Assembly (NCBI GenBank): GCA_964035545.1
Contig: OZ037772.1
Coordinates: 6,680,889 to 6,744,888, forward strand
DNA: 64,000 nucleotides
DNA from: Bugula neritina
Lineage: Eukaryota; Animalia; Bryozoa
Direction: 5' to 3'
The notes beneath the pieces are model-generated. The model made no database searches, was not told the origin of the DNA, and was given only the letters and a program-made list of their open reading frames with translations. How positions within the stretch are numbered: position 1 is the first letter of the stretch; each line of letters opens with the position of its first letter. The translations under genes were made by a program, and so were the position numbers. Shown here in pieces: positions 1 through 54,847 of the stretch.

Positions 1-2822
1 AACACAAGCTGAGGTGCATCGTCTGCTGAAAGAGGGTCATGTGACTGAGAAGATCAGAGAAAAGAAGAGACTAGCCAAAGAGATGGAAAGGCATGATGTA
101 GAAAATCTGGGTGATTGTAATCTCACTGATCTACCAACCTTAATAGAGACAGGTTTGTGATGTTTTCAATTGACAATTAAGTAACATCTGCCAATTAGTT
201 GGCTCTTTCAAGAAATGACTTGCAAAATGTTATCTCTCTCTCTCTCTTTCTCTCTCCCTTTTTCAGTCAGTCGATGCAAATGTGAATGTTTCACAATTTG
301 GTCTTGAATTTGGTTGCAGCCTTTCACGCAACTCTGTACTGCCAGTGGTCTGTTTTCAGGAACTCAAGTTGATTATTCTCCCTTTCATATTTTTCTTAGC
401 AACATCTTCAAGTCTGAGTCTAAGCTGCCCTCCATTCCTTTTGCCGTTTTTCAGCTGAAAGTGAATCAATTTTCTTCGTAGCTGGCTATCTTCCTTCCTG
501 TGCACATGGCTTACCCGTCTCAGGTTATTTTCAAAAAGAATGTCAGCCATGCTTGGCAAGTTGTAACATCTTAGTATTTCTTCATTCATAACTTTGTCAC
601 ATCATTTTACAGCAAATGTCTCTACTTTGCCGCATCATGAAAGCGCTTAGATTCTTCACCTGTGTCCTTTATAATGTCCATGTTTCTGCTCTATGCAGCA
701 GACCTGAGAACACCATGAAGTGTTCTGTAGACTTTACACTTCACCCTTATAGATACTCGTCTGCTGTTCTAAAGTCTCTGCTGCAATTCTCCGTAAGCCA
801 CACTTGCTTTGTCCAGTCTGTTCCGCAGCCCTTTATCTATTTTTGCCAAACAGGAAACAGTGATTCTTAGATTAGTACAAGTACAGCTGGTTCATCATCT
901 ATTTTGATAACCTCAAGTTAATATGGAGAGTGAATAAGTTTGATTGGCTAGTACATGCATCTACCTTCTGAATGTTGATTTTTTACATTAGTACCTACAT
1001 ACAATATCTTATGTGAGCAGTGAAATACATTTACACACTGTATAAGCTGAAAGATCATTTAGCTATTTCTCTAAAAAGCTGCTAAAGACCCACAACTGTT
1101 AGTCATTACATTTCATGTGTCGCCACCACTGCAAGACAACATAGTTTACTTTAAACCATGTCGATAACTCACTTAACGGTTTGTTTATTGTAGTTGAAAA
1201 ATTAAATTATAAATAAATTATTATTCTTCCTTTGTATGACAAGCACCATAGTCATGCAGTGTGTTAATTTAATACTTCTTAAAAAACCATTACTATGCTA
1301 TATACTATATATGTGCACACATATCACACATATGTACACATACATATACATACACACATACATACATATAATATTATACTGTATATACATAAATACATAA
1401 CATGCATATATACATGTATGCATCTTATATTCACATATAACACACATAAATTGCACATATGAACATATATAATAATTATAGGAGTTACAGACATCTATAA
1501 GCAAAAATGTACAAAACTTATAGAAATTGCATCAGATACCCATCTAATTTTCTTAGTTATAGGTTTATGGTAACTATCATAAAATCAGGAAATATTTTTG
1601 AGCAAATAAATGCTTTCTAATAAAAATTGATTTCTAATAAACAAACTGAATGATTAACTCTATATTTCATCTTACAGGTCAAAACACAAGTAGACTGTTG
1701 AATCTCAGTCTAGTAATAGTTCCTTCTTCACTGAGATTCATATCTGAACATGAGACAAGTATTGGGTGTTACTCAGCCAATCACAGACAAGACGGTGACA
1801 TACTCATAGGTACTTATAATGGAATACAGTTACTGAGCAGAAATAGTAATGAACTGAGTGGATACAGTACAAGTGAGAAGATAGTAACAGGAGTAGTTGA
1901 GACCCTTCAGAATGCATTCATTCTACACAGAGAAGGTGACATATCTAAGGTAGACATGTGTTTAGCTGGTGACATCACAAAGAGACAACAACTGTTTCAG
2001 TTTGATAGAACAGGTAATGGTGCAGCAGTAATGGCAGTCTCTGACAGATATGTTGTGGTGGATCATCCAGATACTAAACAGCTGATCATCTATGATTTCA
2101 TCACTAAACAGACAGAGACTATTCGTCCTGATGTGTATCCACTTGGTCTACACTTTCTACCAGATGGTCATCTGCTAGTAGTTGGTGGAGAAAAACTGAT
2201 CAAGTACAAAGTAGAGAATGGAAAGCTGACTACAGTATGGAGATGTGATGGTGTAACAGATGGATACGGTGTCTGTGCAGATTCTAATGATCTCATCTAC
2301 GTTTCTGGAAGAAGCTTGAAGTTGCTTTACATCATTTCTCCATCAGGTGCGGTTGCTTAAGCATGTGTATGCTGCGAGTAGAAAACTCCAAATATAATTT
2401 CAGAGTTCATCAAAAGTTTTGGAAATAACGAAAAATCTTAGCAAAACATATATTGAAAGTTTTGGAAATACTGTGTTCTGCTGTATCAAATTACTGCGTC
2501 TCCATAATAATATAGTCACATTAAGCTGAAATCTAGGTTTGCGCATTCCCACATTTTTCCCCAATTCACATGCAAACCTTGTCTATAAATTATGAAGTAA
2601 ATTGAGTGCACTTTCGATAAAATTTCTTATAAACCTATTAGGTTTACTTTGTTTACATTGCTAGTGTATATTTGTATATATTAAACAGGTGCTCTTCTCA
2701 AGACACTGACTCATGATAAATTACCATCTATTTTTTCTGGAGTACCGAGTATCAGAGATGGGATACTGGCTGTACCTGGTTGGGATGAGAAAAAGTTGTA
2801 TCTTTTTGAAATAAAAACCTAA
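1..2822 (+). CDS. TRIM-like gene copy A (5' part outside window): coiled-coil exon 2, beta-propeller exon, terminal exon
   Basis: Exons <1-152, 1678-2346 and 2689-2822 have GT-AG boundaries and phase-1 junctions, and read open: ...LIETG|QNTSRLL...IISPSG|ALLKTLTHDKLP...GWDEKKLYLFEIKT*. Exon sizes (669, 134 nt) match copies C and E. Confidence 0.88.
232..900 (-). mobile_element. RTE-clade LINE 3' fragment in intron 5 of copy A
   Basis: Minus-strand translation NEEILRCYNLPSMADIL...LRRVSHVHR...QLKNGKRNGGQLRLRLEDVAKKNMK resembles the RTE C-terminal region. Ends in a (GA)n tail. Absent from the equivalent intron of copy E. Boundaries approximate. Confidence 0.75.
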
Positions 2823-3879
2823 GTAATATGCTAAGCAAATGGTAAACTTGGTTTTTAATATGCTCTATGTTTTACATTTTCATTCATATTGTTCAAAATT
2901 TGGATTTATGGCAAAATTTGTTGCTCTTATAACTGAATGAGTTAGCTTTTCACAAGTCTAATGACATTTTTTAAACATTCGTTATGAATATGGTTTCAAA
3001 AAGTCTGAAAACAGCCAAAAAAAACATTTTTATTATGATTCTTGCCACAAATACTTATCCTTGTTTGATTGATAACGACACATTGAATCGTATCTAATAA
3101 TTATGTTTGTCATGTTGCCTTTTATAGTTAGTCGAGCCTAATCAGAGCCGGTTACCAAAATAATCACTTCCCTAATACATCTTTTTTGCATATATTATAT
3201 TATATAAGTATACTCATATTCAAAAGTTGCTTGTTTAGCGTAACATCCAAGCATGTACACATATCATATTATATTACTATTAAAAAAGTATATTAATATA
3301 CTATATATAGCAGTCTGCTTGTTATAATTATTTACTTCTCAAACAAATTTGAAGTTTTTTTCACAATTTTTTTTAAATATTTGATAAAAACTAAAAAAAA
3401 ATAAAACACACAAGTTTAAAGCTATAGATATGTGGCCATTAATTGTTGTCACTGAGCTAGCTAAAACTATAGCATGTGTTTGCAAATAGTTCTTGTCATA
3501 ACTTATAGTAGACAGAATGTTTGCAACTGTCTATTGCTGCATGTGAATAAGAAATTTATAAAAGAATTTGGCGTTTCCATACATAGTATTAAATAGTTTG
3601 TATAGAAAAGCTGCATTTTAAGACATGGAATACTAACCACTTTATAATCTATAATCTATATGTGATTGCATACAACTAAAATCTTTATACTAATTAATAT
3701 TTAATAATCGAGACTAGCATAGAAGTTTTTCAAGTAGTAAAAGGTGGTAGGTAACTAATATTCACAAACCTTGTCTATAATTAGTTATGAAGTAAATTGA
3801 GTGCACTTTGAAATATTTTTTATAAACATTCCAGTTTACTTTGTTCCCATTGCAGTGTATAGCTGTAAATATTAAACAG

Positions 3880-12083: not shown

Positions 12084-14025
12084 TTTTACATTATTTTTAG
12101 TTTAAAATAGATTGAGTCGCAGATAACTGAATTACAAGAATTGAAAATTTAATTCTGTTTAATGTAATGGATAGGGCATTTCTGTTGATAGAGTATACAC
12201 AACTAAAACAATAATGAGCGGATTGTGGCGAATAATATGTGTTTTCTGTTATGATAGTTTAGAGAAAAATAAAGATGGCTGCCCAGCAACTAACAGAATG
12301 GTATGAGTGTGGTTATTGTGTCTCTAAGAGAGATGACATGAGAGATCCAAGAGAGCTGCCTTGTCAGCATGTATTCTGTTTGAGTTGTATTCAAGGACAT
12401 TACAGTAAACATAGAACTGTGACCTGCCCTATTAACACTTGTGGGTAAGTACTATGTATATACTGATCGTGTCTTTAAAGTACTTATGTTGTAGTAATAC
12501 TATTAACAAAAGAGTTCTTAGTTGTCTTTGTAAATCTATATGTGTTGACTTTGAACTACTTATTGTAAACTTCATGTGCTTACTCTCAGCTAATTTGCAA
12601 AAGACTACAATCTGTGAACTTGGATGTTTAATAATTTTAGGGTTTTACTCAAAATTAAATTTATAAAGATTAAAATTAAAAAGTACATTTTTACACACAT
12701 GCAAACATATTATTATTGTATGAGATTGAAAAGAGGCTTAAATACTACGAAAAACAGATAAGAATGATTTCATCAGTGTCATAGCAAAATTAATTTGTTT
12801 ATACAGGATTGCTAAATTTATTTGCGTATTTTTTTTTCAAAATCTCAACACTAATCAATTTTAGAGAAGTGTATGAATCAATAGAGTTTGAAAGTCTGCC
12901 AAAGATTACCATAGCAGTATGTTACTGTGTGACATGCAAAGACAAGTTCTGTTCTCATCATCAGCAGGTAAAATTATATTCTCTCTTAGTCTCATATAAA
13001 ATAGGGATGTGAGCAAATAGTATTTAAACTATTTATAGTGCATTTTGATAAACAATTTCAGTTTATAGTTATAATTTTGTAACCATATGGAATGGTCATA
13101 TTGAAAATTGAAGTCTGAAATGCAACAGTGGATGAAAAAGTTCTTATGGTAAAATCATTTACTTTTCATTTCACCTTTATATATCAAAAAGATGCTTGTA
13201 TTACAGAGTTGCTCCTCTTGGTTGTTTTAAAACATGTAACTGACCAATTTCTTCTACTAATTGAATTTATAGAAGCGTTTTTTGTTCGTTATATGGAGAT
13301 AGTATATTAAAATAATGCAAAGTAAAGTTGAGTCTATTAAACAGCACTTGTTACTGCTCATCTCTTCATTTAAATGGTTCACTTATACTTATAATCAGCT
13401 GAAAAGAGCATATATTTTAGATTAAAGTTAATGATAATTTTTAATTATGTGTCTAGCTTTTGAAGTGATGCTTTGAAGTTGGAAGCAGAATACATTGTTG
13501 AAAGAAATTGGTCCGTTTTTGAATGTGCACTCCGTAGTAAGTCATTGACTGCACATGACAAATACACTGTAAATTATACAACAATAAGCTAAATGTCTCA
13601 TGTGATCATATACATAGCGCAGACATTTTTTAAAAATATGCTTCTGCTTTTTCAACAACTTTAATAAAGTCACTTCAAAAAAATACTATCTCACATTCTA
13701 GGTGCATCAGACACTTCATAGTGATTCTCACAAGGTCGTGGGCATTGATGTCTACAAGAGATCACCTGCTAGTTATGACAAACCAATATGTGAACATCAT
13801 CAAGAGGTTCTAGTAAAAGCTTGTAAGAAATGTGACAAACTGATCTGCTTTGAGTGTGAGATAGATGGCTATGACTGCACAAGTGAGTAGCGAAGTGTAC
13901 ACATATAAAACAGATAAATTAAACTTAGAGTATTGTTGGTTGCAATACAAATTGATGCCGCTTATTTAAACAAATGAAATTATACTTGACTTTGCTGTTG
14001 TTTTTTTAAAGAATAAGCTAACATA

Positions 14026-14321: not shown

Positions 14322-15198
14322 AATATTTATAAAGTTTAAGTTGTGAGATTTTTCCACCTTTTAATGGTTGTTACAGTTATATTACATGTGCTCAGCCAAC
14401 AACAAATAAAAAAAATACAGCTTATATGTAGACTACTGAATGTCAGTCTAGTAACAGTTCCTTCTTCACTGACATTCATATCTGAACATGAGACAAATGG
14501 TCAGTGTGTGGCAGCTCATCACAGACAAGATGGTGACATACTCATAGGTACTGCTAATAGAATACAGTTACTGAGTAGAGATGGTAATGATCTGAGTGAA
14601 TACAGTACAAGTGAGAAGAGAGTAACAGGAGTGATTGAGACTCCTCAGAATGTCTTCATTCTACACAGAAAAGGTGACGTATCTAAGGTAGAGATGTGCT
14701 TAGCTGGTGACATCACAAAGAGACAACAGCTGTTTCAGTTTGATAGAACAAGTGCTATTGCAGCAGTAATGGCAGTCTCTGACAGATATGTTGTGGTGAA
14801 TCATCCAGATACTGGACAGCTGATCATCTATGACTTTATCACTAAACAGACAGAGACTATTCATCCTGATGTGTATCCACTTGGTCTACACTTTTTACCA
14901 GACGGTCATCTGCTAGGAGCTGGTGGATATAAACTGATGAAGTACAAAGTAGAGAATGGAAAGCTGACTACAGTCTGGACATGTGATGGTGTAACAGATG
15001 GATACAGTGTCTGTACAGATTCTAATGGTCTCATCTATGTTTCTGGAAAATTCCTAAAATCAATTTACATCATTTCTTCATCAGGTACTGCTTGTAATAA
15101 ACGCCAATTAAGATATTTGATGTGGGGAATATAAATATAAAACTTGATGAAAGCTTCTGAATGTAGGAGCTGGCTGAATCAAAGTATATATTGAATAT

Positions 15199-15624: not shown

Positions 15625-17832
15625 ATATGAGGTTGGTGTGAACTCATCTTATGAAGAATGTTAATTTTTTCAATATATTTTTCCTATGACAATATATTAG
15701 ACTCTAGTGTATTCAATACTAATTTTTCTGTATATACTTTACCAATGCTTGATATAGAGGACTAATATAATGTTTGGCTTCCTAGAGTATTGCTCATATA
15801 TGTACAGCATATTATTTTCTTTTGTTATATTATACTTAGTGTAATTCAGCATCATCGTAGTATATTTCTTTATACGTGTATACATGTATTAAACAGGTGT
15901 TCTTCTCAAGAAACTGACTAATAGTAAGCTGCCATCTGAATTTGCTGGAGTACCAAGTATCAGAGATGGAATACTGGCTGTACCTGGTTGGGGAGATGAG
16001 AAAGTGTATCTTTTCAACATGCAGTAGAAACTTCAAGCACTGTAAAGTTGAACAATTCAATAGTTCCTGTTTCAAACAATTATTTATCTGTATTATCCAA
16101 ACCAATTTCTGTCCTCTATCTAAAAATTAATAACTTATATCCTACTGTCACTTCATATATATAAGATTATCAATAATCATTTCGGTGGATAGACAAGTGT
16201 TAATAACAAATTTTATCATAATTACATTTGATAACAATTTCCAAAACAATTCAATTATATTGTCGTGTTTTTGAATTATACAAGATTGTTAACAATTATT
16301 CCTGCAGAAATGTATATTTAATTATACCATTGTCACAACGTTTCAACAGAAAATAATTTCAAATGCTATTATACTCCACCAACTAATATTTTATGCTGGT
16401 TATTTTGCTTGAGTTTTCACTTTTACATTTATTAAAACACTGCTATATAATTTTGAATTTCTATGCATTTATAGACACCATTCATAAATCAAATATGTTA
16501 ACATTGTTGTAATATGTTAAAACATATTTTGTAAAAAAGAAAGATTTTATCTAGTTGACCTTACCAACCATGCATGCACATTAGTTGATATAACTGAAAT
16601 ATGTTGTATTTGTTATAATGAGTAGTATATCTTTACTTGCTAATCTATTTATAAATTGCAAGATTTGTTCTTTCATCAAGCTAAATGATAATATTGTCCA
16701 ATCAAGTTCAGCGGAAAGCTACAATGTTTAAAACAATGCCGAAAAATACAGCAGTATAAATAGAAGTTTGATGCATTTTAAAAAAGTGGAAACATACAGA
16801 TATAAATGCATGTGCTTCTTTCAGCACAGTTTCTTTCTACAATTGCTGAGAACACACAATACCAAGATATATTATATATTATACTACGAAATACCACATT
16901 CTTCAGAAAAGCACAAAAGGGGTTCTATAATAACTATATAAAGTGCATTGGAATTTTTACTGCAAAGCAGTAGCACTAATGGTAGAAATTATTCTGTTAT
17001 AAGTTACCGAAGAATTAGAAATTGTTGTGTTACGATGCCATGCATGAACACATGATTATATTAGCTTGCAGTTCTATGAAGTTTTTTTATTATTGCGTGG
17101 AATTGTTTAAAAAAAGTAAAAAAGCTATTTATATAAATAAACGCTAAATAAAAGTGTAGTTTATTATTTTATAAGCACATGGTAAGCTTTATATAGGCAC
17201 AGTAAAATGTATTTTATTTTTTATCCAATAAATAGTTTGGCTGTGTGTGAAACATGCATAATTCGTGATCATTGGGTGGCTCAAAATATGCAAGATTAGC
17301 TACAGACTAACATAAAATTACAGTTATACATTACATAATTATCAATTGGCAAAAGCTTGCTATAGTAACATCAGTCTTTTTTGCTCATTGTTATACTCAC
17401 AATAGCATAAAAGAACACATTACATATTGTATCATAACATTATTCGACAGATTGAATACAATTATTGTTTTTGGCAACAAGAATACTGAACTGTGGTTAC
17501 TGTAGCTCTCAGCTTGTACTGAATATACAAAGGTTATGCTGTATAATTTATCATTGTCTCAAACAGCTCCTCTTGTATATTTGTAAAGCAGTAACAGCAA
17601 AGCCTTCCATACAGATGCTGAAGAGAAACTAATTGATTTCTTAGGACTCTTATAACTGAATGCTTGCAATTATATACAAAAACATCAATATGTTTTGTAC
17701 AATAAAATTCTAAGCCAGCATTATTACGATCAAAGCTAAACATGATAAATATGGATACAATTTTGCATATTACAAAGTGCAGTGAGTTCAGAGGAGACAA
17801 AAGAACCTACTAGAAGGCAAAAAGTTATTGTT

Positions 17833-20631: not shown

Positions 20632-20843
<212 letters not shown>

Positions 20844-21393: not shown

Positions 21394-21394
<1 letters not shown>

Positions 21395-31200: not shown

Positions 31201-34200
31201 TTGCACTTTTTAATAGATAACAATTAAAGTTGATATGTTCTTGAAAATTGATTACGATGATACTGTGTTCTAAAATTAGACAGCAACACTTATAAAATGC
31301 AAGAATAAAATAATGCTTCATACATATACTAAAACACAAAATTAACTTCTCACAACTAAGAAACTATTCCATGTTAGCCAATAAACTAAATTGAAAGTTT
31401 TGTGGGTGAAAACAAAAGTATATTCAGTGAACCCAAAGCAAACCTTTCTCACAAAACTCTTAGTTAAAACTAATCCAGAAATGTAAAAATTTAAATTGAA
31501 CATTTCCCCTCAAGAGATTTTGCATTTTTGCTAAATATGTTCAAACCAGATAGAAAGGCATGTGTAAATATTAAAATAATTATTTTTCACTAAATCAAAA
31601 TTTCCTGCAACTAAAACGCTTTTCTTTGAATTAATCAAAGTTTGTCATATAAAGTCTGAGCTTGAAACAAAGCTGAGATGTAATTAGGTCAAAATGCATT
31701 CATATAAATCAAGTAAATTGTTTTTTTGAATTCACATTATTTTGTTTACACAACAGCAATATTTTAGATAAAAATAATAACCAATGAGAGTCAAGAGCTG
31801 ATTGACAGAGTTGCAACCCACAAAGTCAAAGTGACCAATCAGGTGGAGGATTTTTACAACAAGCTGATGCTGAAGAAAGATGGGTTGGAGAAGACACAAG
31901 CTGAGGTACATCATCTGCTGAAAGATGGTCATGTGACTGAGAAGATCAGACAGAAGAAGAGAGTAACAGAAGAGCTAGAGAGACATGATGCAGATAAACT
32001 GGATGATTGTGAACTTGTTGATCCACCAACTGTAATAAATACAGGTTTGTGAAGTTTTCATTTGAAAATATCTTCTGACACTAAGTCCAACCTGTACAGA
32101 AAAATTGCTGACTATCTCAAAAAGATGGAAGGATAAAGGCAGGTAACAAGTGCTCTCCAAATGCAACCTGATTACTTTAAATAACTAATAAACAGAAAAC
32201 GTGCGTTGGTTATTTATAAAGAGCAATTTTAATCGATAACTTATTGGCAAGCAGAACTTGGTTGAAAACCTATTTGGAGTTTATTAGAGTACTAGTCTAA
32301 TCCACAAGGTGACTCCGCCACACCTCCTTACACACAATAAAGCACACCCAAGAAGAGTATGTTAACTTAGTTTTAAAATAAAACCCCTGAGCTTCCACTA
32401 GATACATCAAGAAAATATACCCCAAAAGAACAAATTTGACAGGTTTAATATGTGTTAACCTAGAAGATGGATAAATGTAAAGCCAGACGTTGGTACAATT
32501 AAACATAAAAGATTACTTATGGTAGTGTACAGTTTGCAAAACCTTATTGCATTGACAAATAACATGCAATTACGCTAGGTTTTCGACCAAAATGTGGATA
32601 TAGTACCTGTAGACCTCAGTGATAAATTTTCATTAGCCTCTCCTACACACCTGGTACTGTTTCTTGAAGACACTTTGATTTTATTTTTGGATTTCGTGTT
32701 GGTTTTTTTCAAATTCGATTGCTTATTGACAAACTGCAAGTCCACGCAAGATAGATAAGGGAAACCTTTTAGCTTTCACTGCCTTGCTGAAGCCACATTA
32801 TTGGTATATTAAAAGAATTTAGTCCAGCCAAATAAAACCTCACTTAATTGTACTAGAATTAAAATTTAAAAACCGTGTTTTAGATCTTTCTGTTCTTCAG
32901 AGCACTTGCTTTTTTGAGTTGTCAATATTTTTTTGCAAAGGTATAGACAAAAGTCTACCCATTTTTGGCCAATTTTACCTGAAAAATATATTTTTCAATC
33001 TCTGCCAAATATCTCAGCAGGAAAGCATGGTATTCGAATAAAACAAACACTGTAGGAAACCTGAGAAATATATTATGCTTTGCAAATTTTCTAATCTTTT
33101 CAATAGCTTTCATAGATTTTCTACAAGTTAGTGATTTATACACCGAAAATGGAAGATTTTTTCCTTAGTAGTCACCAATGCACAGCACTTTGCGCTTCAG
33201 TGAACACGTAGAGATAAGAAGATGGAATGTTGATAGCTGCATATTATTCATAGTGTAATCTCAGGCTAAACAATCACAAGTAGGCAACACACATGCCACC
33301 CACATAGCATTAACATAACAAGAACTTAAACTAGATTGTGAGCGAAATTTATGATATTCTCAGTGAGGATGCTCTAACTATCCTGTGCACTAATCATGTT
33401 TCAAAAATATGCCCATACGGGCGTATGGCCTAGAACAGTCTATTTTCTTCTAGGCCATACGGCGTATGGGACCGTATGGGTACCACTAAATCCCTGCATA
33501 CACATAGGCCTATACCTGACATGCATGTTATATATGCATGTACATACTAAATTAGACATATGTATATAATCTTTAGTAACTACAGGCATATATAAGCAAA
33601 AATATACAAAATTTGTAGCAATTACATCAGATGATTTTCTCATTTTCTTATTTATAGATTTATTCTAACCATCTTAACATCAAGAAATATTTTTGAAAAA
33701 ATAGAATATACTTTCTAAAAAAAATTGATTTCTAATAAACATTAAATGATAAACACTATTTAGCATTTTACAGGTCAAATCACAAGTAGACTGTCGAATG
33801 TCAGTCTAGTAACAGTTCCTTCTTCACTGACATTCATATCTGAACATGAGACAGATGGTGGGTGTTTCTCAGCCAATCACAGACAAGATGGTAAAATACT
33901 CATAGGTACTGGTAATGGAATACAGTTACTGAGTAGAGATGGTAATGAGCTTAGTGAACACAGTACAAGTGAGAAGATAGTAACAGGAATAATTGAGGCT
34001 CCTCAGAATGTCTTTATTTTACACAGAGAAGGTGACATAGATAAGGTAAAGATGTGTTTAACTGGTGACATCACGAAGAGAAAACAACTGTTTCAGTTTG
34101 ATAGAACAAGTACTGATGAAGCAGTAATGGCAGTCTCCGACAGATATGTTGTGGTGAATCATTCAGATACTAAACAGCTGATTCTCTATGACTTCATCAC

Positions 34201-34880
34201 TAAACAGACAGAGACTATTCATCCTGATGTGTATCCAGTTGGTCTACACTTTCTACCAGATGGTCATCTGCTAGGAGTTGGTGGAGGTAAACTGATAAAG
34301 TACAAAGTAGAGAATGGAGAGCTGACTACAGTCTGGACATGTGATGGTGTAAAATGTGGATACAGCGTCTGTAATGATTCTACTGGGCTCATCTATGTTT
34401 CTGGATTGAACTTGAAGTTGCTTTACATCATTTCTCCATCAGGTGCTGTTGCTTAAGCATGTGTATACTTCGAGTGGAAAACTCTAAATATAATTTCAGA
34501 GTTTATCAAAAGTGTTAGAAATGTCGAAGATTATTAGCAAAACCTATATTGAAAGTTTTTGAAATACTTTCTCCATAATATAGTCACACTGCTGAAATCT
34601 ATTTTTGGGTACCCCCACATTTTTCATATAATTCACAAATCTTGTCTATAAATTATGAAGTAAATTGCTTGCACTTTGATATTTTTTTATAAACTTTCCA
34701 GTTAAGTTTGTTTTCATTGCAGTGTATATTTGCATATATTAAACAGGTGTTCTTCTCAAGAAACTGACTCATGATAAGTTACCAACTGAATTTGGTGGAA
34801 TACCGAGTATCAGAGATGGAATACTGGCTGTACCTGGTTGGGAAGAAAAGAAGTTGTATCTTTTTAAAATAGAAACCTAA
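28291..34880 (+). CDS. TRIM-like E3 ligase copy C (RING-Bbox1-Bbox2-coiled coil-six-bladed NHL-like propeller), 594 aa, intact
   Basis: Exons 28291-28454, 28862-29021, 29946-30126, 30740-30939, 31768-32044, 33774-34442 and 34747-34880 total 1785 nt, all GT-AG and in frame. RING CGYC-x14-CQH-x2-CLSC-x12-CPTC. B-boxes CTAHGC...CYCVKC...FCTQH and CENH...[13 protein letters not shown]. Blades such as [13 protein letters not shown] and [15 protein letters not shown]. Confidence 0.93.
29180..29740. repeat. Compound (CA)n/(CGCA)n microsatellite with three copies of tagtatatgaattatac in intron 2 of copy C
   Basis: Directly visible. Confidence 0.95.
33412..33496. repeat. Hairpin at the end of a probable hAT-like non-autonomous element in intron 5 of copy C
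   Basis: cccatacgggcgtatggcctagaa / ttctaggccatacggcgtatggg near-perfect inverted repeat, then a ...CCCTG terminus. The region ~32075-33496 has no counterpart in the introns of other copies. Confidence 0.45.
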
Positions 34881-36802: not shown

Positions 36803-39800
36803 AGAAGTGTGTGACTCACTGGAGTTTGAAGGTCTGCCAAAGGTTACCATAGCAGCTAGTGACTCTAATACTCTGTTCTGTACAGCTTGTGAATGTCAAG
36901 GTCAAATAGCTACATGTTACTGTGTGACATGCAAAAACAAGTTCTGTTCTCAGCATCAGCAGGTAAGAGAATATTCTCACTTTACTCCATTTTGTATATA
37001 TAGGGCACAGAAGAAATAGTATTTAAAAACTATTTATAGTGCATTTTGATAAAATATTTGAGGCTATGGTTATAATTTTGTAAAAATGTTGATAGGCCAT
37101 GTTAAAAATTAAAGTCCGGAATGTAACAGCAAATAAAGAAGTTTTTTATTTCCCATTTCACCTTTATAACAAAAATTGTTTACATAGAGAATTACTCTTG
37201 ACCGTTGTTTCAAAACTTATATTTAAACTGACTAAAGTTTTCAATATTCAAATCAGAGAATTTTTTTCTCTTCCAAATGTATAAGAGTTATATTTTAACA
37301 ATAAGCAAAGTTAGGTTGAGTCCATCAAACAGCATTTTTTTCTGCTTATATATCTTTATTTAAATTCTTTGCATATCAGCTGAAACAAGTATCTTTTAGA
37401 TGAAATTTGTTTTTTAATTTTGTATGAAATGTTTAGCTTCTACAGCATATGATGCTTTAAGAGGTTTCAAGCAGAATACATCTTTGACAGAATTTGTTCT
37501 ATTATTGAACGTGCACTGAGTTATAGTAAGTCATTGACCGCACATGACAATTACGCAGTGCAAATTATACAATACACATAATGTGTCAAGTGATCATATA
37601 AGTATAGCACAGGCGTTAAAAAAAGAAGTTTGGTTTCTAACATCGTTACTAAAACTACCTCAGAAAATGTTATCTTATCATTCTAGGCACACAAAACACT
37701 TCACAATGATGTTCACAAAGTGGTGGACATTGACGTCTACAAGAGATCACCTGCTAGTTATGATAAGCCGACTTGTGAACATCATCAAGAAGTTCTAGTA
37801 AGAGCTTGTCAGAAATGTGACAGACTGATTTGCTTTGAGTGTGAGATTGATGCAGAAGACTGCACAGGTAATATTTGGTAATTCACTGTTGAAAAATTGT
37901 TTCTAAAGAACACTTTTCACTGAGGTGTATCACTACATTCACAAAACTTCGAATAGATCAGTACGGGTGCTGATATGTATGTATTTGTGATTGCAGTTTG
38001 TATTAACTTATAGTTCTGGCTTCAATAGGTGCAACTGCTTTCAAACTATGCAAAAAAAAAAAATTCCATAATTTGAAGCTTCAAATTGCAGTGATGCTTT
38101 AAACCACTCAGCTATCCTTTGTTTTCTAATGATAATATGACAAGTTTTCACATGAGCTTGTAAACACAAAATGATCAACAATTTAGTCCTCAAAGTAAAA
38201 ATGGTTTTGCTTATCTTTTAAGATCAGTCAGTATCTTTATGTATCCATGAGAATTTTTTAAATTTTTGAACACTTATTTTATTTATTCATTGATTATTAC
38301 TCTTAATCACTTGAACAAAGCTCATACACTGTCATTTTATAATTAAATAATATTTTCCAGTTTCAACATCTGACTGAACAAAAAATAACTCACCACTTGA
38401 GAGTCTATATTGTTGTTAATTGGTTATAGCAAATGTGGAGTTTATTCTAAACTATAATGTACAATGCAATGGGCTACGCAAATGTAAGATTAAACAACAA
38501 TTTAGTAAACGTATAACAGATAACTGCTGCCCGATCTTAATTTAATTAAATGATAATTGTGACTTACAATTTAAAATAACTTAGTACCCCGGAAAAGTTC
38601 CTATTGAATTTTGACTCAATAGAAAGTCAAGTTATTGTATGATCAATAAATCTGCAACAATATAACAAGGAAATATTTTATTTTGGTGCTTACCGAAAAC
38701 AAACTTTGCTTGGTGAAATTTACATATGTTCAATGCTTTAGACTGTTTTGAAACACTGCATTACGTAATCAAATCAAAACTTTAGATCAAGAAAGACATG
38801 AGTTTAAATCTCTTACATCACTGAAGGAAGAGGTGAACACCTACATTTCCAGTCAGCTGAAAGTAATTGTTGAAAATATTACCAAGATATGTTCTTTGGA
38901 CAAGAAGGTGTGGAATGATCTTGATGATCAAAAAGAGAAATGTTCATATGTCATAAGAGAGATAGAGACAATTAGAAATGAAATGGTGAGTTTGTCAGTT
39001 AACTGCCTTTCACATATCATTGCTTGTTTTAAGTCTCATCACAATCATCACAGAATTATTTACAGTATTCAATTAGCTAGTATTGAAATTGCCTGGAAAC
39101 CACAACCATCATCATAATTATTTTCATGTTTATGAGAGCAGTCAACAAACGAGTTGTATAGTAATTTTATAAATTAAATTATGGTTTGTTCAAAAAGGAA
39201 AATATTTCAAGACATGCAGAGTATGTATAATATCACATTAGTTTCTATTTTGAAAGTAATAAATAAGCAAAGGAATTATCTTTCAATCCGTTTCTGCTTT
39301 AAGTATCTTTTACAGAAAATCAGAAGTTACTTTCTTACAAGTGCTGCGGATGAAAATAAATTTAAGTTATTTAAGGTCCAAATATTTTTTAACACGACAG
39401 CTATATAATATTCCTATCTGAGTTTTAAATGTTTATATATTGGGCTCAAAAATTTCTGCTTTTAGATCCAAAGAATAACTAATGAGAGTCAAAAGCTGAT
39501 TGACAGAGTTATCAATCACAAAGAAGAAGTGACCAATCAGGTGGAAGATTTCTACAACAAGCTGATGCTGAAGAAAGATGGGTTGGAGAAAACACAAGCT
39601 GAGGTGCATCGTCTGCTGAAAGAGGGTCATGTGACTGAGAAGATCAGAGAAAAGAAGAGACTAGCCAAAGAGATGGAAAGGCACGATGTAGAAGATCTGG
39701 GTGATTGTAATCTCACTGATCTACCAACCCTAATAGAGACAGGTTTGTGATGTTTTTAATTGACAATCAAAGAACATCTGCCAATTAGTTGGATCTTTCA

Positions 39801-42800
39801 AAAAATGACTTGCAAAATATTCTCTCTCTCTTTCTCCCTCTCTCTCTCTCTCTTTCAGTCAGTCGATACAAATGTGAATGTTTCTCAATTGGTCTTAAAT
39901 TTGGGTGCAGTTCTTCACGCAACTCTGTTGTCAGTGGTCTAGCTGTTTCCAGGAACTCAAGTTGATTGATCTCCATTTCATATTCCTCTTAGCAACATCT
40001 GTAAGTCTGAGTCTAGGCCACCCTCTTTTCCTTTTGCGATCTTTCAGCTGAAAGTAGAGCAATTTTCTTGGTATAACCGGCTAGCTTCAATCATGTGCAC
40101 ATGGCTTACCCATCTCAGGTTCTTTTTTATAAGGATGTCAGCCATGCTTGGCAAGTTGTCACGTCTTAGTATTTCTTCATTCAGAACTTTGTCATACCAT
40201 TTTACAGCAAATGTCTCCAATTTGCCGTATCATGCAAGCGCTTAGCTTCTTCACCTGTATCCTTTATAATGTCTATGTTTCTGCTCCATACAGCAAACCT
40301 GAGAACATCATGAAGTGTTTTGTAGACTTTACACTTTACCCTTATGGATACACGTCTGCTGTTCTGAAGTCTCTGCTGCAATTTTCCGTAAGCCACACTT
40401 GCTTTGCCCAGTCTGTTCCGCAGCTCTTTATCTATTCTTGCCAAACAGGAAACAGTGCTTCCTAGATTAGTACAAGTACAGCTGGTTCATCATCTGTTTT
40501 AGTAACCTCTGGTTTATATGGAGAGTAAATAAGTTTGATTGGCTGGTACATGCATCTACCTTCTATAAATGTTGATTTTTTATATTAGTACCTATACATA
40601 CAAGATCTTATGTGAGCAGCGAAATACATTTACACACTGTATAAGCTGAAAGATCATTTAGCTATTTCTCTAAAAAGCTGCTATAGACCCACAACTGTTA
40701 GTCATTACATTTTATGTGTAGCCACTACTTCAAGACAACAGATTTTACTTTAAATCATGATGATAACTCACTTAACGGTTTGTTTATTGAAGTTGAAAAA
40801 TTAAATTATAAATAAATTATTATTCTTCCTTTGTATGACAAGCACCATAGTCATGCAGTCTGTTAATTTAATACTTTATAACAAACCATTACATGTATTA
40901 CTATGATGTACTATATATGTGCACACATATCACACATATGTACATGCATACACACACATACATATAATATTATACTGTATATACATAAATACATCACATG
41001 CATATATACATGTATGCATCTTATATTCACATATAACACACATAAATTGCACATATGAACATATATGATAATTATAGGAGTTACAGACATATAATATAAG
41101 CAAAAATGTACAAAACTTATAGAAATTGCATCAGATACCCATCTAATTTTCTTAGTTATAGGTTTTTGGTAACTATATCATAAAATCAGGAAAAATTTTT
41201 GAGCAAATAAATGCTTTCTATAATAAAAAATTATTTCTAAGGAACAAACTAAATTATTTACTCTATATATCATCTTACAGGTCAAAACACAAGTAGACTG
41301 CTGAACATCAGTCTGGTAACAGTTCCTTCTTCACTGACATTCATATCTGAACATGAGACAAGTGATTGGTGTTACTCAGCCAATCACAGACAAAATGGTG
41401 ACATACTCATAGGTATTGAAAATGGAATACAGTTACTGAGTAGAGATGGTAATGAGGTGAGTGAATACAGTACAAGTGAGAAGAGAGTAACAGGAGTGAT
41501 TGAGACTCCTCAGAATGTCTTCATTCTACACCGACAAAGTGACATAGATAAAGTAGACATGTGTTTAGCTGGTGACATCAGAAAGAGACAACAGTTGTTT
41601 CAGTTTGATAGAACAAGTAGTATTGTAGCATTCATGGCCGTCTCTGACAGATATGTTGTGGTGAGGAATCCAGATACTAAACAGCTGATCATCTATGACT
41701 TCATCACTAAACAGAAAGGGACTACTCGTCCTGATGTGCTTACACGTGGCATACACATTTTACCAGATGGTCATCTGCTAGGAGTTGGTGAAGATAAATT
41801 GAATAAGTACAAAGTAGAGAATGGAAAGCTGACTACAGTCTGGACATGTGATGGTTTAACAGATGGATACAGTGTCTGTACAGATTCTAATGGTCTCATC
41901 TATGTTTCTGGAAAATTCCTAAAATCAATTTATATCATTTCTTCATCAGGTACTGCTTGTAATAACAACCAATTAAGATATTTGATGTGGGAAATATAAA
42001 TATAAAACCTGGTGAAAGCTTCTGAATGTAGGGGCTGGCTGAATCAAAGTACATATTGAATATGAGTCATTTCACTTCATTTAGTACAAATCAGCAGATT
42101 GTGATTACCTAACATTAAAGTTTGTCCAAAATATATTAAAATTTACCATACATGATGTTTTGTGAACCAGTTCTAATTACATGCATAACAGAAAAGACTG
42201 AAAGAGGATTTCCCAACATTAAAGCAGCAGTCATTATTATATGCACTAAATGTTTTCTTTGTGCAATTGTCCCAAAAACTGTGACATTCGCAAATCCAAG
42301 CTACCTAAATAATTGGGAAAAAACATGGGAAATTAAGCAAAATTAAAAGCAACCTTGATTATTCATTTGTATTTATGAATAGGCTATTAGTTTTGAGTGC
42401 AAACCCATATATATACATAAATAGCAAATAAATTGGGAAAAATAGCTAAAAACTGGAGATTTCGAATCCCTAAACTTAATAAAATGACCCATATGAGGTT
42501 GGTGTGAACTCATCTTGTGAAGAATGTTAATTTTTTCAATATATTTTTTCTATGACATTATATGGGACTTTAGTGTATTCATTACTAATTGTTCTGTATT
42601 TATTTTACCTATGTTTGCCTATAGAAGCCTAATATAATGTTTTGCTTCACAGAGTATTGCTCATATATGTACAGCATATTATTTTCTTTTGTTATATTGT
42701 ACTTAGTGTAATTCAGCATCATCGTAGTATATTTCTTTATACGTGTGTATACATGTATTAAACAGGTGTTATCCTCAAGAAACTGACTCATAGTAAGCTG

Positions 42801-42896
42801 CCATCTGAATTCGCTGGAGTACCAAGTATCAGAGATGGAATACTGGCTGTACCTGGTTGGGGTGATAAGAAAGTGTATCTTTTCAATATGCAGTAA
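36803..42896 (+). CDS. TRIM-like gene copy D lacking promoter and RING exon; remaining six exons intact
   Basis: Exons 36803-36962, 37687-37867, 38786-38985, 39466-39742, 41281-41949 and 42766-42896 have canonical sizes (160, 181, 200, 277, 669, 131), GT-AG sites and no stops. No MAAQ/RING exon upstream. May be a pseudogene. Confidence 0.8.
39822..40500 (-). mobile_element. RTE-clade LINE 3' fragment in intron 5 of copy D (same insertion as in A)
   Basis: ARIDKELRNRLGKASVAYGKLQQRLQNSRRVSIRVKCKVYK on the minus strand, with a (GA)n tail. Confidence 0.78.
42064..42490. mobile_element. MITE in intron 6 of copy D (same insertion as in B)
   Basis: GAGTCATTT...AAAATGACCC with ATAT TSD. Confidence 0.8.
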
Positions 42897-48043: not shown

Positions 48044-48234
48044 TTTTACATTATTTTTAGTTTAAAATAGATTGAGTCGCAGATAACTGAATTACAAGAA
48101 TTGAAAATCTAATTCTGTTTAATGTAATGGATAGGGCATTTCTGTTGATAGAGTATACACAACGAAAACAATAATGAACGGATTGTGGCAAATAATATGT
48201 GTTTTCTGTTATGATAGTTTAGAGAAAAATAAAG

Positions 48235-51200
48235 ATGGCTGCCCAGGAACTACCAGAATGGTATGAGTGTGGTTATTGTATCTCTAAGAGGGATGACATG
48301 AGAGATCCAAGAGAGCTGCCTTGTCAGCATGTATTCTGTTTGAGTTGTATTCAAGGACATTACAGTAAACATAGAACTGTGACCTGCCCTATTAACACTT
48401 GTGGGTAAGTACTATGTATATACTGATCGTGTCTTTAAAGTACTTATGTTGTAGTAATACTATTAACAAAAGAGTTCTTAGTTGTCTTTGTAAATCTATG
48501 TGTGTTGACTTTGAACTACTTATTGTAAACTTCATGTGCTTACTCTCAGCTAATTTGCAAAAGACTACAATCTGTGAACTTGAATGTTTAATAACTTTAG
48601 GGTTTTACTCGAAATTAAATTTATAAAAATTATAATTAAAAAGTACATTTTTACACACATGCAAATATATTATTATTGTATGAGATTGAAAGGAGGCTTA
48701 AATACTACGAAAAACAGATAAGAATGATTTCATCAGTGTCATAGCAAAATTAATTTGTTTATACAGGATTGCTAAATTTATTTGCGAATTTTTTTTTCAA
48801 AATCTCAACACTTATCAATTTTAGAGAAGTGTATGAATCAATAGAGTTTGAAAGTCTGCCAAAGATTACCATAGCATCTGGTGACTCTAATACTCTGTTC
48901 TGTACAGCTCGTGAATGTCAAGGTCAAATAGCAGTGTCTTACTGTGTGACATGCAAAGACAAGTTCTGTTCTCATCATCAGCAGGTAAAATTATATTCTC
49001 TCTTAGTCTCATATAAAATAGGGATGTGAGCAAATAGTATTTAAACTATTTATAGTGCATTTTTATAAACAATTTGAGTTTATAGTTATAATTTTGTAAC
49101 CATATGGAATGGTCATATTGTAGTAGATTTGTGGGTTATAGAATGAAATCAGGCAGAGAACATAACTCCTTGCTATAAAAGAGACAAGAGAGGTGTGACT
49201 TCGTGTGTGTATAGTGATCTTTATTATAACAAAGATGTATACAGCTCAGACTCCAGCGCTGAAGTGCTGAGCTGGGCAAAAAACGCGTGCTTTTATACTA
49301 ACAAAAGACGGGGATTTGGGCCTTTCAGAACATTCCATCGACAGCGGAGCCAATATTCGGCAGGGGTACCAACATTCGTCGTGTCGGTTACCGACATTCG
49401 TCGTGTCGGTTACCGACACTGGACATGTCGGTAACCGACATTCGGTCTGCCTGTAGCCACCTGCCGATATCGGTACATCTGTCGGTTTACAAGTATAAAG
49501 AAAAGGATCAACCAAGAGTATTGTAATAAGTTATTGTTGTAAGAATAAAGAAAAGGGTAAACCATAAGTATTATAATAACTGAGACTGTGTCTGTAATAC
49601 TAGTTATGGGAATGGGGCAAAGGGGGATAACTTGATATCTAGATATTTACTACAATATTAAAAATTGAAGTCTGAAATGCAACAGTGGATGAAAAAGTTC
49701 TTTTGGTAAAATCATTTACTTTTAATTTCACCTTTATATATTTAAAGGATGCTTGTATTACAGAGTTGCTCCTCTTGGTTGTTTTAAAACATGTAACTGA
49801 CCAATTTCTTCTACTAACTGAATTTATAGAAGCGTTTTTTTTGTTCGTTATATGTAGATAGTATCTTAAAACAATGCAAGGTAAAGTTGAGTCTATTAAA
49901 CAGCACTTGTTACTGCTCATCTCTTCATTTAAATGGTTCACTTATACTTATAATCAGCTGAAAAGAGCATATACTTTAGATTAAAGTTATTGTTAATTTT
50001 TAATTATGTGTCTAGCTTTTGAAGTGATGCTTTGAAGTTGGAAGCAGAATACATTGTTGAAAGAAATTGGTCCATTTTTGAATGTGCACTCCGTAGTAAG
50101 TCATTGACTGCACATGACAAATACACTGTAAATTATACAACAAGCTAAATGTCTCATGTGATCATATATATAGCGCAGACATTTTTTAGAAATATGCTTC
50201 TGCTTTTTCAACAACTTTAATAAAGTCACTTCAAAAAAATCCTATCTCACATTCTAGGGGCATCAGACACTTCATAGTGATTCTCACAAGGTCGTGGGCA
50301 TTGATGTCTACAAGAGATCACCTGCTAGTTATGACAAACCAATATGTGAACATCATCAAGATATTCTTGTGAGAGCTTGCAAGAAATGTGGCAAACTGAT
50401 CTGCTTTGAGTGTGAGATAGATGGCTATGACTGCACAAGTGAGTAGCAAAGTTTACACACGTAAAACAGATAAATTAAACTGAAAGTATTGTTGGTTGCA
50501 ATACAAATTGATGCCGCTTATAATGAAATTATACTTGACTTTGCTGTTGTTTTTTTAAAGAATAAGCTAACATAGTGTAATGGATTCTCATCCTCTATTA
50601 GTTCTGAAATAACTGCGCTTATTGTAATTACTGTTGCGTATCGTTTTGAATTCTGTAATTGTAGTAAGCTAGCTTGCTAATGCCCAATTATTGTGATTAC
50701 TGTTAAAGCTTTCAACATAATGTAATTTTGCTGAAATATGCATTCCGGGGTTATTTTCTTTTGCGTTGCTATTTTATCGTTTTGCATTAATACTGATACT
50801 GGACATTTGTGGTCCGAGTTTCGGCTCTGGCAAATTTTGGAGCTGCCAAATTTCGGACCACAAAAGATCTTTTGTCTACATGTTATTTTGTTCTCTGTGT
50901 ATAAAAGCAGGCGAGTTCCAGTGTAGAATCAGTCTACTACTTATAGAGCTCGCCTGGGTAAGTCAAAGTTATTTCTGCTACAATAAAACATTTTGAACTC
51001 TTCTACCTCAACTTTTCTTGTTCTGCACTAAGTTACATTCAACCCACAAGTTTATCACAATATTTATAAAGTTTAAGTTGTGAGATTTTTCCACCTTTTA
51101 ATGGTTGTTACAGTTATATTACATGTGCTCAGCCAACAACAAATAAAAAAAATACAGCTTATATTTCGATTAAGCAACAATTTCATTCCAAATTCCTATG

Positions 51201-54200
51201 TGATGAATTATTTTGTGTATTGCATTTAAAATAATACTTAGCTGTAATTGGTAACTGACAAAATACTAATAATGAGGTAAATAAGCCTTGCATCCTAACT
51301 TCTCTCTCATAATTTATAACTTGACGTGATTTACTTGCCTAATTATTTGATCACTCATTTTTTTTAAGAAATGTGTAATATATGTTATACTGGTCTAATA
51401 GGTCTTTTGGGCTGTAAAAAGCTGAACATAAAAACATATAGTAGTCATGGGCTTCATGCGCATTATGGGTATCCAAACTAAAGCTTCTATGTAGTTGCAG
51501 CTACAATTATTTAAATACTGAAAATTTAACTAGTAATGTATTTTCTATATGCAGATCAAGAAAAACATGATTTCAAATCTCTCACATCACTGAAGGAAGA
51601 GGTGAACACCTACTTTTCCAGTCAGCTGAATGTAATTGCTGAAAAGATTACCAAGATTAGTTCTTTGGACAAGAAAGTTTGGAATGATCTTGATGATCAA
51701 GAAGAGAAATGTTCAGATGTTATAAGAGAGATCGAGACAGTTAGAAATGAGATGGTGAGTGGTTAGTTGTAGTTTCTTTTTGTGATTCATTTTTAAAACA
51801 CCAACATTTTTGAAAGTGTATGTATCCTCAAATGATTAAACTTTAGAAAAAAATTTAGGTCAACACTAACAATGTGTAATAAATTTAATATCGCTATCTT
51901 GCGTATTTATATATATTCTCATTAGGTATTTAAAATCCGTAATAGCTATATACAACTTCACACAAGTTTGGCTTACAAAACAAAGTGATAATAAAGTATT
52001 TGTAATAGTATATTTTGCATCTTTTTAATATATAACAATTATTGTTGATATGTTCTTGAAAATTGATTACCATATGATACTATATTCTAAAATTAGACAG
52101 CAACACTTATAAAATACAGGAATAAATGCTTCATACATGTACTAGAATGCAGAATTTATTTGTGACAACTAAAAAACTATTCCATGTTAGCCAATAAACT
52201 AAATTGAAAGTTTTGTGGGTGAAAACAAAAGTATCTTCAGTGAACCCAAACAAACTTTTCTCAAAAAACTCTTAGTCGGAAACTAATCTAGAAATGTAAA
52301 AATTCAAATTAAAAATTTCACTCCAAGAGATTTTTCATTTTTGCTAAATATTTTCAAAACAGACAGGAAGGCAAGTGTGAATATTAAAATAATTATTTTT
52401 CACTAAAAATTAAAACTTTTTGCGATTAAAAAACTTTTCTTTGAACTGATCAAAATTTGCCATATAAAGTTTGAGCTTAAAACAAGCTGAAAATGTAATT
52501 AAGTCAAAATGCGTTCATATAAACATATAAACCAATTAAATTGTTTTTTGAAATGCATATCTTGTTTACACAGCAGCAACATTTTAGATCCAAAGACTAA
52601 CTAATGAGAGTCAAGAGCTGATTGACAGAGTTACAAACCACAAGGCTAAGGTGACCAATCAGGTGGAAGATTTCTACAACAAGCTGATGCTGAAGAAAGA
52701 TGGATTGGAGAAGACACAAGCTGAGGTACATTGTCTGCTGAAAGATGGTCATGTGACTGAGAAGATCAGACAGAAGAAGAGAGTAACAGAAGAGATGATC
52801 AGACATGATGCAGATAAACTGGGTGATTGTGAACTTGTTGATCCACCAACTGTAATAAATACAGGTTTGTGACGTTCTTTTTGAAAATATCTTGGCTATA
52901 ACAATCAGAAAACATCTGCCAATTAGTTGGCTCTCTCAAAATGATGACTTACCAAACTTTATTACAGTAGATTATAAACAATAAAGTAGGATGTATATTA
53001 TATCACTACCTACATACAATTATATGCTGTGGGCAGCAAATTACATTTGCACACTATATATGCTGAAAGACCATAATTATTTCTCAAAGAAGCTGCTAGA
53101 GACCTACAACTGTTAGTCATTACATTTCATGTGTAGCCTCTACTGCAAGACAATAACCTTTACTTTAAACCATGTTGATAACCCAATTTACAGTTTGTTT
53201 ATTGAAGTTAAAAAGTTAAAGTATGAATATATTATTATTCCTTCTTTGTATGACAGTCAAACACCATAGTCATGCAGTGTGTTAAATTAATACTTTATAA
53301 CAAACCATTACATGTATTACTATGTTATACTATATACGTGCGCACATATCACACACATATATAGATGCATACATACACACATACATACTGTATATAGACA
53401 TATACATGGCAGGCATATATACATGCATGCATATTACATGCATGCATATTAAATGCACATATAACATACATAAATTGCGCATATTATAGACATATATAAT
53501 CTTTATAGTTTTTACAGGCATATATAAGCAAAAATGTACGAAACTTGTGGCAATTTTATCAGATAATCATCTCATTTTCTTAGTTATAGGTTTATGCTGA
53601 CAGAAATAAAATTAGGAAACATTTGTGAAAAAATAAAATTATGCTTTCTGATGAAAATTGATTTTCAATAATTGTACTTAATGACTAACTATATATTATA
53701 TCTTAATGTCACAACGCAGGTCAAAACGCAAGTAGACTACTGAATGTCAGTCTAGTAACAGTTCCTTCTTCACTGACATTCATATCTGAACATGAGACAA
53801 GTAGGTGGTGTTACTCAGCCAATCACAGACAAGATGGTGACATACTCATAGGTACACAGAATGGAATGCAGTTACTGAGTAGAGAGGGTAATGAGCTGAG
53901 TGAATACAGTACAAGTGAGAAGAGAGTAACAGGGGTGATTGAGACTCCTCAGAATGTTTTCATTCTGCACAGAGAAGGTGACATAGATAAGGTAGAGATG
54001 TTTTTAGCTGGTGATATCACAAAGAGACAACAACTGTTTCAGTTCGATAGAACAAGTACTGTTGCAGCAGTAATGGCAGTCTCTGACAGATATGTTGTGG
54101 TGAATCATCCAGATACTAAACAGCTGATCATCTATGACTTCACCACTAAACAGACAGAGACTATTCATCCTGATGTGTATCCAGTCGGTCTACACTTTCT

Positions 54201-54847
54201 ACCAGATGGTCATCTGCTAGAAGTTGGTGGAAATAAACTGATAAAGTACAAAGTAGAGAACGGAGAGCTGACTGCTGTCTGGACATGTGATGGTGTAACA
54301 GGAGGATACAGTGTCTGTACAGATTCTAATGGTCTCATCTATGTTTCTAGAAGAAGATTGAAGTTGCTTTACATCATTTCTCCATCAGGTACGGTTGCTT
54401 AAGCATGTGTATGCTGCGAGTAGAAAACTCTAAATATAATTTTAGAGTTCATCAAAAGTGTTTGAATTGTTGAAAATTATTAGCAAAACATATTTTGAAA
54501 GTTTTTGAAATACTGTTTCTGCTGCATCAAATTACTGTCTCCATAATATAGTCACACTGCTGAAATCTAAGTTTGTGTATCCCCACATTTTTTCACATAA
54601 TTCACACACCTTGTCTATAAATTATGAAGTAAACTGAGTGCACTTTGATATTGTTTTAAACCTTCCAGTTAACTTTGTTCCCAAGGCAGTGTATATTTTT
54701 AAATATTTGACAGGCGTTATTCTCAAGACATTGACTCATGATAAGTTACCAACTTGTTTTGCTGGAGTACCGAGTATCAGAGATGGAATACTGGCTGTAC
54801 CTGGTTGGGGAGACAAGAAATTGTATCATTTTGAAATAGAAACCTAA
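48235..54847 (+). CDS. TRIM-like E3 ligase copy E (RING-Bbox1-Bbox2-coiled coil-propeller), 596 aa, intact
   Basis: Exons 48235-48404, 48825-48984, 50258-50438, 51555-51754, 52588-52864, 53720-54388 and 54714-54847 total 1791 nt, GT-AG, in frame, MAAQELPEWYEC...KLYHFEIET*. Confidence 0.93.
49119..49654 (-). mobile_element. Solo LTR (536 bp) in intron 2 of copy E
   Basis: TGTAGTA...TACTACA ends, ATAT TSD, empty site in copy B at ~13100. TATAAAA and AATAAA on the minus strand. Internal gtcggttaccgac repeats. Confidence 0.88.
50576..51059 (+). mobile_element. Solo LTR (~484 bp) in intron 3 of copy E
   Basis: TGTAAT...ATCACA ends, imperfect TSD ATAG/ATAT, TATAAAA at ~50900 and AATAAA at ~50982. 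Confidence 0.68.

Follow-up and report, generated by a model that had tools for sequence, protein, structure and literature searches.

The NHL-type TRIM proteins (class VII: Brat, Mei-P26, LIN-41/TRIM71, TRIM2/3, TRIM32 and NHL-2) are known as a few conserved, single-copy developmental regulators of RNA, and the top face of their NHL domain, which is positively charged in the classical members, is the usual platform for ligand binding. In vertebrates, diversified TRIM families are a recognized arm of antiviral innate immunity, and the module that varies in them is the B30.2 domain. These B30.2 multigene TRIMs (fish finTRIM, btr and trim35; primate TRIM5alpha and TRIM22) represent large lineage-specific tandem expansions of TRIM ligases, with paralogs that vary in the surface loops of their C-terminal recognition domains and carry signatures of diversifying selection (PMC3137616). 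Here, we describe a 64,000-nucleotide stretch of DNA from the bryozoan Bugula neritina (the window; G000:C8:6680889-6744888 in a 216-Mb assembly), which is recognizable as eukaryotic from its G+C content of ~31% and its near lack of long open reading frames. The window is best explained as holding five members of a tandemly arrayed, bryozoan-specific multigene family whose genes are predicted to encode TRIM-type E3 ubiquitin ligases with a C-terminal six-bladed NHL-type propeller, and whose paralogs differ chiefly on one face of that propeller. The account as a whole, comprising a TRIM-propeller array, a variable top face, gene conversion, diversifying selection and a recognition repertoire, is one in which we place reasonable rather than high confidence.

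The Bugula genes share with the TRIM-NHL proteins the predicted order of RING, B-box, coiled coil and C-terminal six-bladed propeller, and the face formed by the D-A and B-C loops, which varies in Bugula, is the functional surface of TRIM-NHL proteins (PMC4015489). Unlike those proteins, the Bugula propellers are only 9-14% identical to solved NHL domains and are not accompanied by a filamin domain, and in place of a few conserved genes there are dozens of tandem paralogs with a top face that is hypervariable in sequence and variable in charge. In its lineage-specific tandem expansion, with at least 34 plus 11 paralogs in one genome, the family is of the finTRIM/TRIM5alpha type. It differs from the B30.2 TRIMs in its bryozoan host, in a recognition domain that is a predicted beta-propeller and does not qualify as PRY/SPRY or B30.2/SPRY, and in that selection is less firmly shown. 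The nearest named full-length relatives outside Bugula, Watersipora subatra XP_067933727 ('TRIM25-like') and XP_067941719, possess a RING, a B-box, a coiled coil and the same propeller, but are only 36-43% identical over the propeller; in a Watersipora relative, P0108, all four of these elements lie in a single protein of 619 amino acids. The Bugula family appears to set the pattern of a diversified TRIM repertoire on an NHL-like propeller, for which no prior report was found in the searchable literature. Looking there for diversified NHL TRIM families in invertebrates, or for work on Bugula gene families, returned nothing relevant, which does not prove that no such report exists.

Self-comparison of the window revealed five copies (A to E) of a 660-nucleotide exon, 89-90% identical to one another, at about positions 1690, 14428, 33786, 41293 and 53732, each followed by an exon of ~130 nucleotides. 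A preliminary description of this DNA had placed five copies at these sites, and its limits are exact: position 1678 is the first base of the copy A propeller exon, and 54847 falls at the stop codon of copy E. In all five copies the propeller exon is intact and spliced and its frame is open. These copies belong to a cluster of at least 34 intact paralogs (cluster 1; 72-88% identity) that occupies ~600 kb of the contig (C8:6.63-7.21 Mb), and in 34 of 34 the propeller exon is open and ends in a canonical GT donor. Eleven further paralogs, with ~58% identity, are found together with some fragments at 9.31-9.42 Mb (cluster 2). The nearest named proteins are hypothetical proteins of B. neritina (83-85% identity), and a search of 1.84 billion representative proteins matched only 185 clusters (50% identity) to the family, the named ones being bryozoan.

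The fold of the domain was predicted with AlphaFold2 from a 68-row alignment on residues 17-281 of the annotated B. neritina protein P0004. The resulting model contains 24 strands, with a predicted local distance difference test score (pLDDT) of 94.2 and a predicted template modelling score (pTM) of 0.90. In an exhaustive VIA-align comparison, ranks 1 to 4 were taken by the NHL domains of Brat, TRIM2, Mei-P26 and Lin41 (Z 25.6-26.2, root-mean-square deviation 2.6-3.9, 239-249 residues aligned), followed by a small margin by other six-bladed propeller families (Z 22-24). A Foldseek search of the PDB was swamped by seven-bladed WD40/G-beta chains (template modelling score about 0.6-0.68) and was uninformative; it was VIA-align that settled the fold. 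Language-model features also point toward NHL clusters, as a lead only. The domain is therefore NHL-like by predicted fold, with membership by sequence unproven. Among the four series of loops in the model, only L1, L5, L9, L13, L17 and L21 (4, 7, 8, 7, 5 and 12 residues) never include a hairpin of 2-3 residues, and because no other series is never shorter than four residues these were assigned as the inter-blade D-A links. It follows that the N-terminal strand closes blade 6 and that L3, L7 and so forth, which have the same parity, are the B-C loops. In NHL domains, the top surface is by definition the one that bears the D-A and B-C loops (PMC4015489).

Mapped onto this model, the variable sites of the family are concentrated on one face of the propeller. 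Among the 34 cluster 1 paralogs, 24 of 61 top-loop columns are hypervariable, compared with 2 of 41 bottom-loop columns (odds ratio 12.6, Fisher p = 5.5e-5), and the independently diverged cluster 2 repeats the enrichment when one flanking residue is added (26 of 85 versus 6 of 63, p = 0.002). Column entropy in cluster 1 peaks at model residues 26-28, 30, 45, 67, 111-114, 127-128, 132, 152-154, 169-170 and 193, with further peaks at 209-215, 235-236 and 254-256. Every one of the twelve top loops carries at least one hypervariable site, and the variable position of the motif IG-Tx-N is filled by 11 different amino acids. The net charge of the top-loop residues, counted from the sequence without coordinates, averages -2.3 and ranges from -9 to +4.

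These results bear out the core of the preliminary description, which had proposed from the five window copies that hypervariable residues recur at the same loops and lie on the top, ligand-binding face. Its residue strings (SIG/NGQ/DGG/SDW/SRW, TY/TA/TG/IE/TQ, GNGA/SAIA/STDE/SSIV/STVA and the rest) all agree letter for letter with the translations, the 34 genomic paralogs vary most at these same columns, and all nine of its patches lie in or adjoin D-A or B-C loops of the model. Rather than being scattered over the structure, the variable columns occupy one face in both clusters. Top-loop sites in blade 2 (residue 67) and in the B-C loop of blade 6 were absent from its list.

Gene conversion between the paralogs is rampant. 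The propeller alignment is visibly mosaic, 30% of biallelic informative site pairs fail the four-gamete test, incompatibility grows with distance, and a permutation test of the pairwise homoplasy index (PHI) type gives p < 0.0005. The flanks are a patchwork as well: A and D differ by 4% upstream and 27% downstream, B and D by 6.5% downstream and 31% upstream, and flanking introns can be aligned in only 29-45% of paralog pairs. In the alignable pairs, intron divergence (0.24-0.28) exceeds the synonymous divergence (dS) of the exon (0.17-0.20). Since this is so, and since dS in the core strands is 0.20, the silent sites of the exon are somewhat homogenized or constrained and not invariant; the assertion that the scaffold is nearly invariant even at silent sites was overstated, yet these sites are indeed less diverged than the flanking introns.

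The ratio of nonsynonymous to synonymous rates (dN/dS, or omega) is 0.66 over the whole domain by pairwise comparison and 0.73 under model M0. When codons are divided into structural classes chosen independently of variability, omega is elevated on the top face, being 1.00 (0.69-1.44) in the top loops and 0.51 in both the bottom loops and the core strands. Site models M1a and M2a were compared in our own implementation. On one tree, twice the log-likelihood difference (2dlnL) was 276, with a positively selected class of omega2 4.0 comprising 8.7% of codons (p2) and 19 sites of posterior > 0.9, 17 of them on the top side; because of recombination, this single-tree value was rejected as stand-alone evidence. 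On six segment trees, 2dlnL was 87, omega2 3.2 and p2 7.2%, and the 12 sites of posterior > 0.9 were all on the top side. For comparison, null data were simulated under M1a with conversion tracts of mean length 12 codons. Kingman genealogies produced 2dlnL of 18-64 (n = 6), and genealogies calibrated to match the richness and diversity seen at synonymous sites produced 0.6-12 (n = 4); the observed six-tree value exceeds all ten replicates. Tests that use no tree point in the same direction: the ten highest nonsynonymous diversities over the synonymous diversity (pS) give 2.92, against a calibrated null 95% range of about 1.9-2.8, and 7 sites have at least 8 amino acids, against a calibrated null mean of 2-3. 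With the null calibrated on synonymous variation, p values ranged from 0/160 replicates to 0.02, and a simulated M2a alternative fits the observed values. A pure Kingman genealogy and the fixed maximum-likelihood tree were rejected as neutral nulls for these tests, neither fitting the pattern at synonymous sites, and minimum-state (spanning-tree) counting of changes was dropped, as synonymous states saturate before amino-acid states. Calibrated against recombination, both the site models and the tree-free tail tests favor a small class with omega above 1, and we consider it probable that a limited number of top-face codons are under diversifying selection; at these sites omega would truly exceed 1.

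Several observations weigh against this account, and most of them are also what relaxed constraint alone would produce. Under that explanation, its main rival, the top loops are free to drift at an omega of about 1, purifying selection and exon-focused conversion preserve the scaffold, and values above 1 result from recombination, from the picking of sites and from an understated dS. As an a priori class, the top loops have an omega that is not above 1. When sites are picked for hypervariability in one cluster and omega is estimated from the other, the values are 0.96 and 1.40, and neither is significantly greater than 1. At the 27 sites of the preliminary description, the five window copies give an omega of 4.4, a circular estimate; for the remaining 29 paralogs it is 1.81 (1.27-2.73), and for cluster 2 it is 1.10 (0.69-1.85). 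Neutral simulations with the same site-picking rule give mean values of 1.6-2.1 by picking alone, and 1.81 was accordingly rejected as proof of selection. Recombination inflates the M2a test, the Kingman null reaching 64 against the observed 87 in a set of just ten replicates, and the exon dS (about 0.19) lies below intron divergence, so that the neutral rate may be underestimated from dS and omega correspondingly overestimated. Two further points concern the propeller and its role. The Pfam NHL repeat (PF01436) matches neither the window exon nor P0004 nor relatives, even at E values up to 1, and Pfam and PDB sequence searches with the propeller exon returned only sub-threshold matches to generic propellers, the PDB yielding nothing useful. 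Moreover, an immune role would follow by analogy only.

Relaxed constraint alone fits less well with the remainder of the evidence. The observed 2dlnL stands above ten of ten null replicates, and the null that fits the synonymous sites reaches just 0.6-12. The nonsynonymous diversity of the top-ranking sites and the number of sites with at least 8 amino acids exceed the calibrated null (p <= 0.02). None of the neutral genealogies tried reproduced pairwise diversity and allelic richness together, which is also a caveat on the tests for selection. In addition, conversion should homogenize neutral loop codons lying between conserved codons, yet the loops stay diverged. We therefore regard relaxed constraint as a serious but rather unlikely explanation of the whole pattern. 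The claim of diversifying selection made in the preliminary description is accordingly favored by the calibrated site models and tail tests, and draws no support from the top-loop class, from cluster 2 or from the uninformative value of 1.81; its comparison of the loops to complementarity-determining regions holds as an analogy only, the diversity here being germline-encoded and shuffled by gene conversion.

In the account with diversifying selection, the family would grow by tandem duplication, with a strand scaffold and bottom face common to the paralogs and differences that fall for the most part in the twelve top-face loops (D-A and B-C). Frequent conversion would keep the exon scaffold alike and reshuffle loop variants into mosaics, and loop differences would be kept or favored, with diversifying selection acting on roughly 7% of codons. 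The outcome would most likely be a set of germline-encoded intracellular receptors or adaptors that differ in binding specificity and direct the ubiquitination of their respective targets, in the manner of the variable B30.2 loops of TRIM5alpha and the fish finTRIMs. We infer a recognition-type function because the RING ligase architecture, the hypervariable canonical face on a conserved scaffold and the tandem expansion match those of the B30.2 TRIMs. A different function for the same surface would be the recognition of diverse endogenous or transposon-derived RNAs, and not pathogen proteins, by diversified RNA-binding regulators. The best structural matches of the model are RNA-binding TRIM-NHL domains, whose top face is an RNA platform, but the variable and on average negative charge of the Bugula top loops, counted from sequence, is unlike the uniformly positive surface of those domains (PMC4015489); the charge is a weak argument, and we hold RNA recognition to be improbable. 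That the array is decaying, its young pseudogenes or non-functional duplicates showing variable patches merely as their most visible mutations, is very improbable, since the absence of coiled-coil exons from copy B, the RING exon not found for copy D and the TAG stop codons in two cluster 2 copies stand against 34 of 34 open cluster 1 propeller exons with canonical splice sites, purifying selection on core strands and bottom loops (omega 0.5), one-face variation in two independent clusters and exon-only coverage in a likely RNA run.

One specific form of the recognition account, which we put forward tentatively and regard as less likely than not, is a bryozoan innate recognition repertoire composed of germline TRIM/NHL-type propeller paralogs with differing top faces, in which selection preserves loop diversity and the conserved strands would supply the homology for conversion to recombine twelve loop 'cassettes'. 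If true, it would be a solution independent of the B30.2 TRIMs, the leucine-rich-repeat receptors and the immunoglobulins, possibly aimed at viruses or bacterial symbionts, in a phylum with almost no immune genetics. The same pattern on an NHL-like top face would mean that recognition repertoires have been built from the TRIM scaffold on more than one occasion. In addition, the array offers a natural collection of propeller surfaces set on one constant framework, and the case illustrates how greatly standard site-model tests are inflated by gene conversion.

The five genes of the window were mapped by tblastn with the exons of copy E as queries (Table 1). The full exon order, RING, B-box, two coiled-coil exons, propeller exon and terminal exon, is present in C and E. 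The RING exons of B, C and E score above the Pfam cut-offs (zf-RING_UBOX 29-32 bits against 25.2; zf-C3HC4 26-28 bits against 21), and the B-box exon, conserved in B, C, D and E, scores slightly below its own (zf-B_box 22.2 bits, E = 1.6e-4, cut-off 24.1 bits). Two conserved exons lie between B-box and propeller, with a faint match to TRIM_CC (E = 0.12). The propeller exon ends in CAG|GT and the terminal exon starts after ACAG|, completing a split Gly codon; P0004 contains exactly this junction, which confirms the splice. In the probable RNA run, coverage is restricted to exon bins, and loose ends read out of an exon directly into the beginning of the following one; its contigs are short and perhaps derived from paralogs, and it thus lends weak support to transcription.

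Table 1. Exons of the five TRIM-propeller genes in the window (positions are those of the window).
Copy	Feature	Position	Strand	Remarks
A	Propeller exon, blades 1-5 and velcro strand	1678..2346	+	Open frame; locus L023
A	Terminal exon (blade 6) with stop codon	2689..2822	+	
B	RING exon	12266..12445	+	Pfam zf-RING_UBOX 32.4 bits, above cut-off
B	B-box exon	13705..13887	+	
B	Propeller exon	14427..15084	+	Homologous acceptor lost, 5' end uncertain; locus L001
B	Terminal exon	15897..16027	+	
C	RING exon	28249..28455	+	C3HC4 pattern; Pfam
C	B-box exon (29946-30125) and coiled-coil exons (30739-30939, 31768-32043)	29946..32043	+	
C	Propeller exon	33774..34442	+	Locus L016
C	Terminal exon	34747..34880	+	
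D	B-box exon (37687-37866) and coiled-coil exons (38785-38985, 39466-39741)	37687..39741	+	
D	Propeller exon	41281..41949	+	Locus L013
D	Terminal exon	42766..42896	+	
E	RING exon	48226..48405	+	Pfam
E	B-box exon (50258-50443) and coiled-coil exons (51554-51754, 52588-52863)	50258..52863	+	
E	Propeller exon	53720..54388	+	Locus L006
E	Terminal exon with stop codon	54714..54847	+	

The remaining copies depart from the full order in different ways. The 5' end of copy A lies outside the window. Downstream of its terminal exon, A possesses a second exon of the same type (blade 6) at about 3882-4010; both match the terminal exon of E with 79-81% identity, and the two may serve as alternative last exons, or may be what is left of a duplication. 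Copy B has no coiled-coil exons: ~2.5 kb is deleted relative to E, and the B-box region is joined directly to the propeller exon. The 5' region of B that includes the B-box exon (13001-14435) is 95-98% identical to E 49018-51172, and the propeller exons of the two copies are only ~90% identical. For copy D, tblastn of the window with the E exons found no RING exon. In the propeller exon of copy E, single-base differences occur at 53803, 54104 and 54184 in contigs of other samples, the first of which changes the hypervariable Arg of 'SRW' to Gly. These could be alleles or the product of cross-mapping between paralogs, which short contigs cannot separate; the Logan contigs are too fragmented across this repeat family for the calling of alleles or of paralog-specific expression.

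Elsewhere in the array, a subset of the genes on the contig (L004, L010, L026 and L029-L034; G000:C8) has a clearly distinct end of blade 5 and a distinct terminal exon, with about 45-54% identity to the usual version (e.g. ...PMG / KLLRKLIHDKLPKV-VGAISVKDD...), which suggests two exchangeable C-terminal modules within the array. In cluster 2, L035 and L036 (G000:C8:9.36-9.37 Mb) each contain one in-frame TAG in the propeller exon and are likely pseudogenes.

The intergenic DNA of the window contains candidate mobile elements and simple repeats. Between copies A and B, an open reading frame of 356 amino acids on the minus strand (7243-8313) matches a Mutator-like transposase family (Pfam PF20700, E = 4.4e-49). 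A block of higher G+C content (39-47%) at about 22000-30000, with an open reading frame at 23385-23822 that weakly matches gag/aspartyl protease, looks like a retrotransposon inserted between copy B and the RING exon of copy C. Long microsatellite tracts of TA/TATA, CT and CA types at 20494-21522 and 29334-29923 give rise to spurious repetitive open reading frames.

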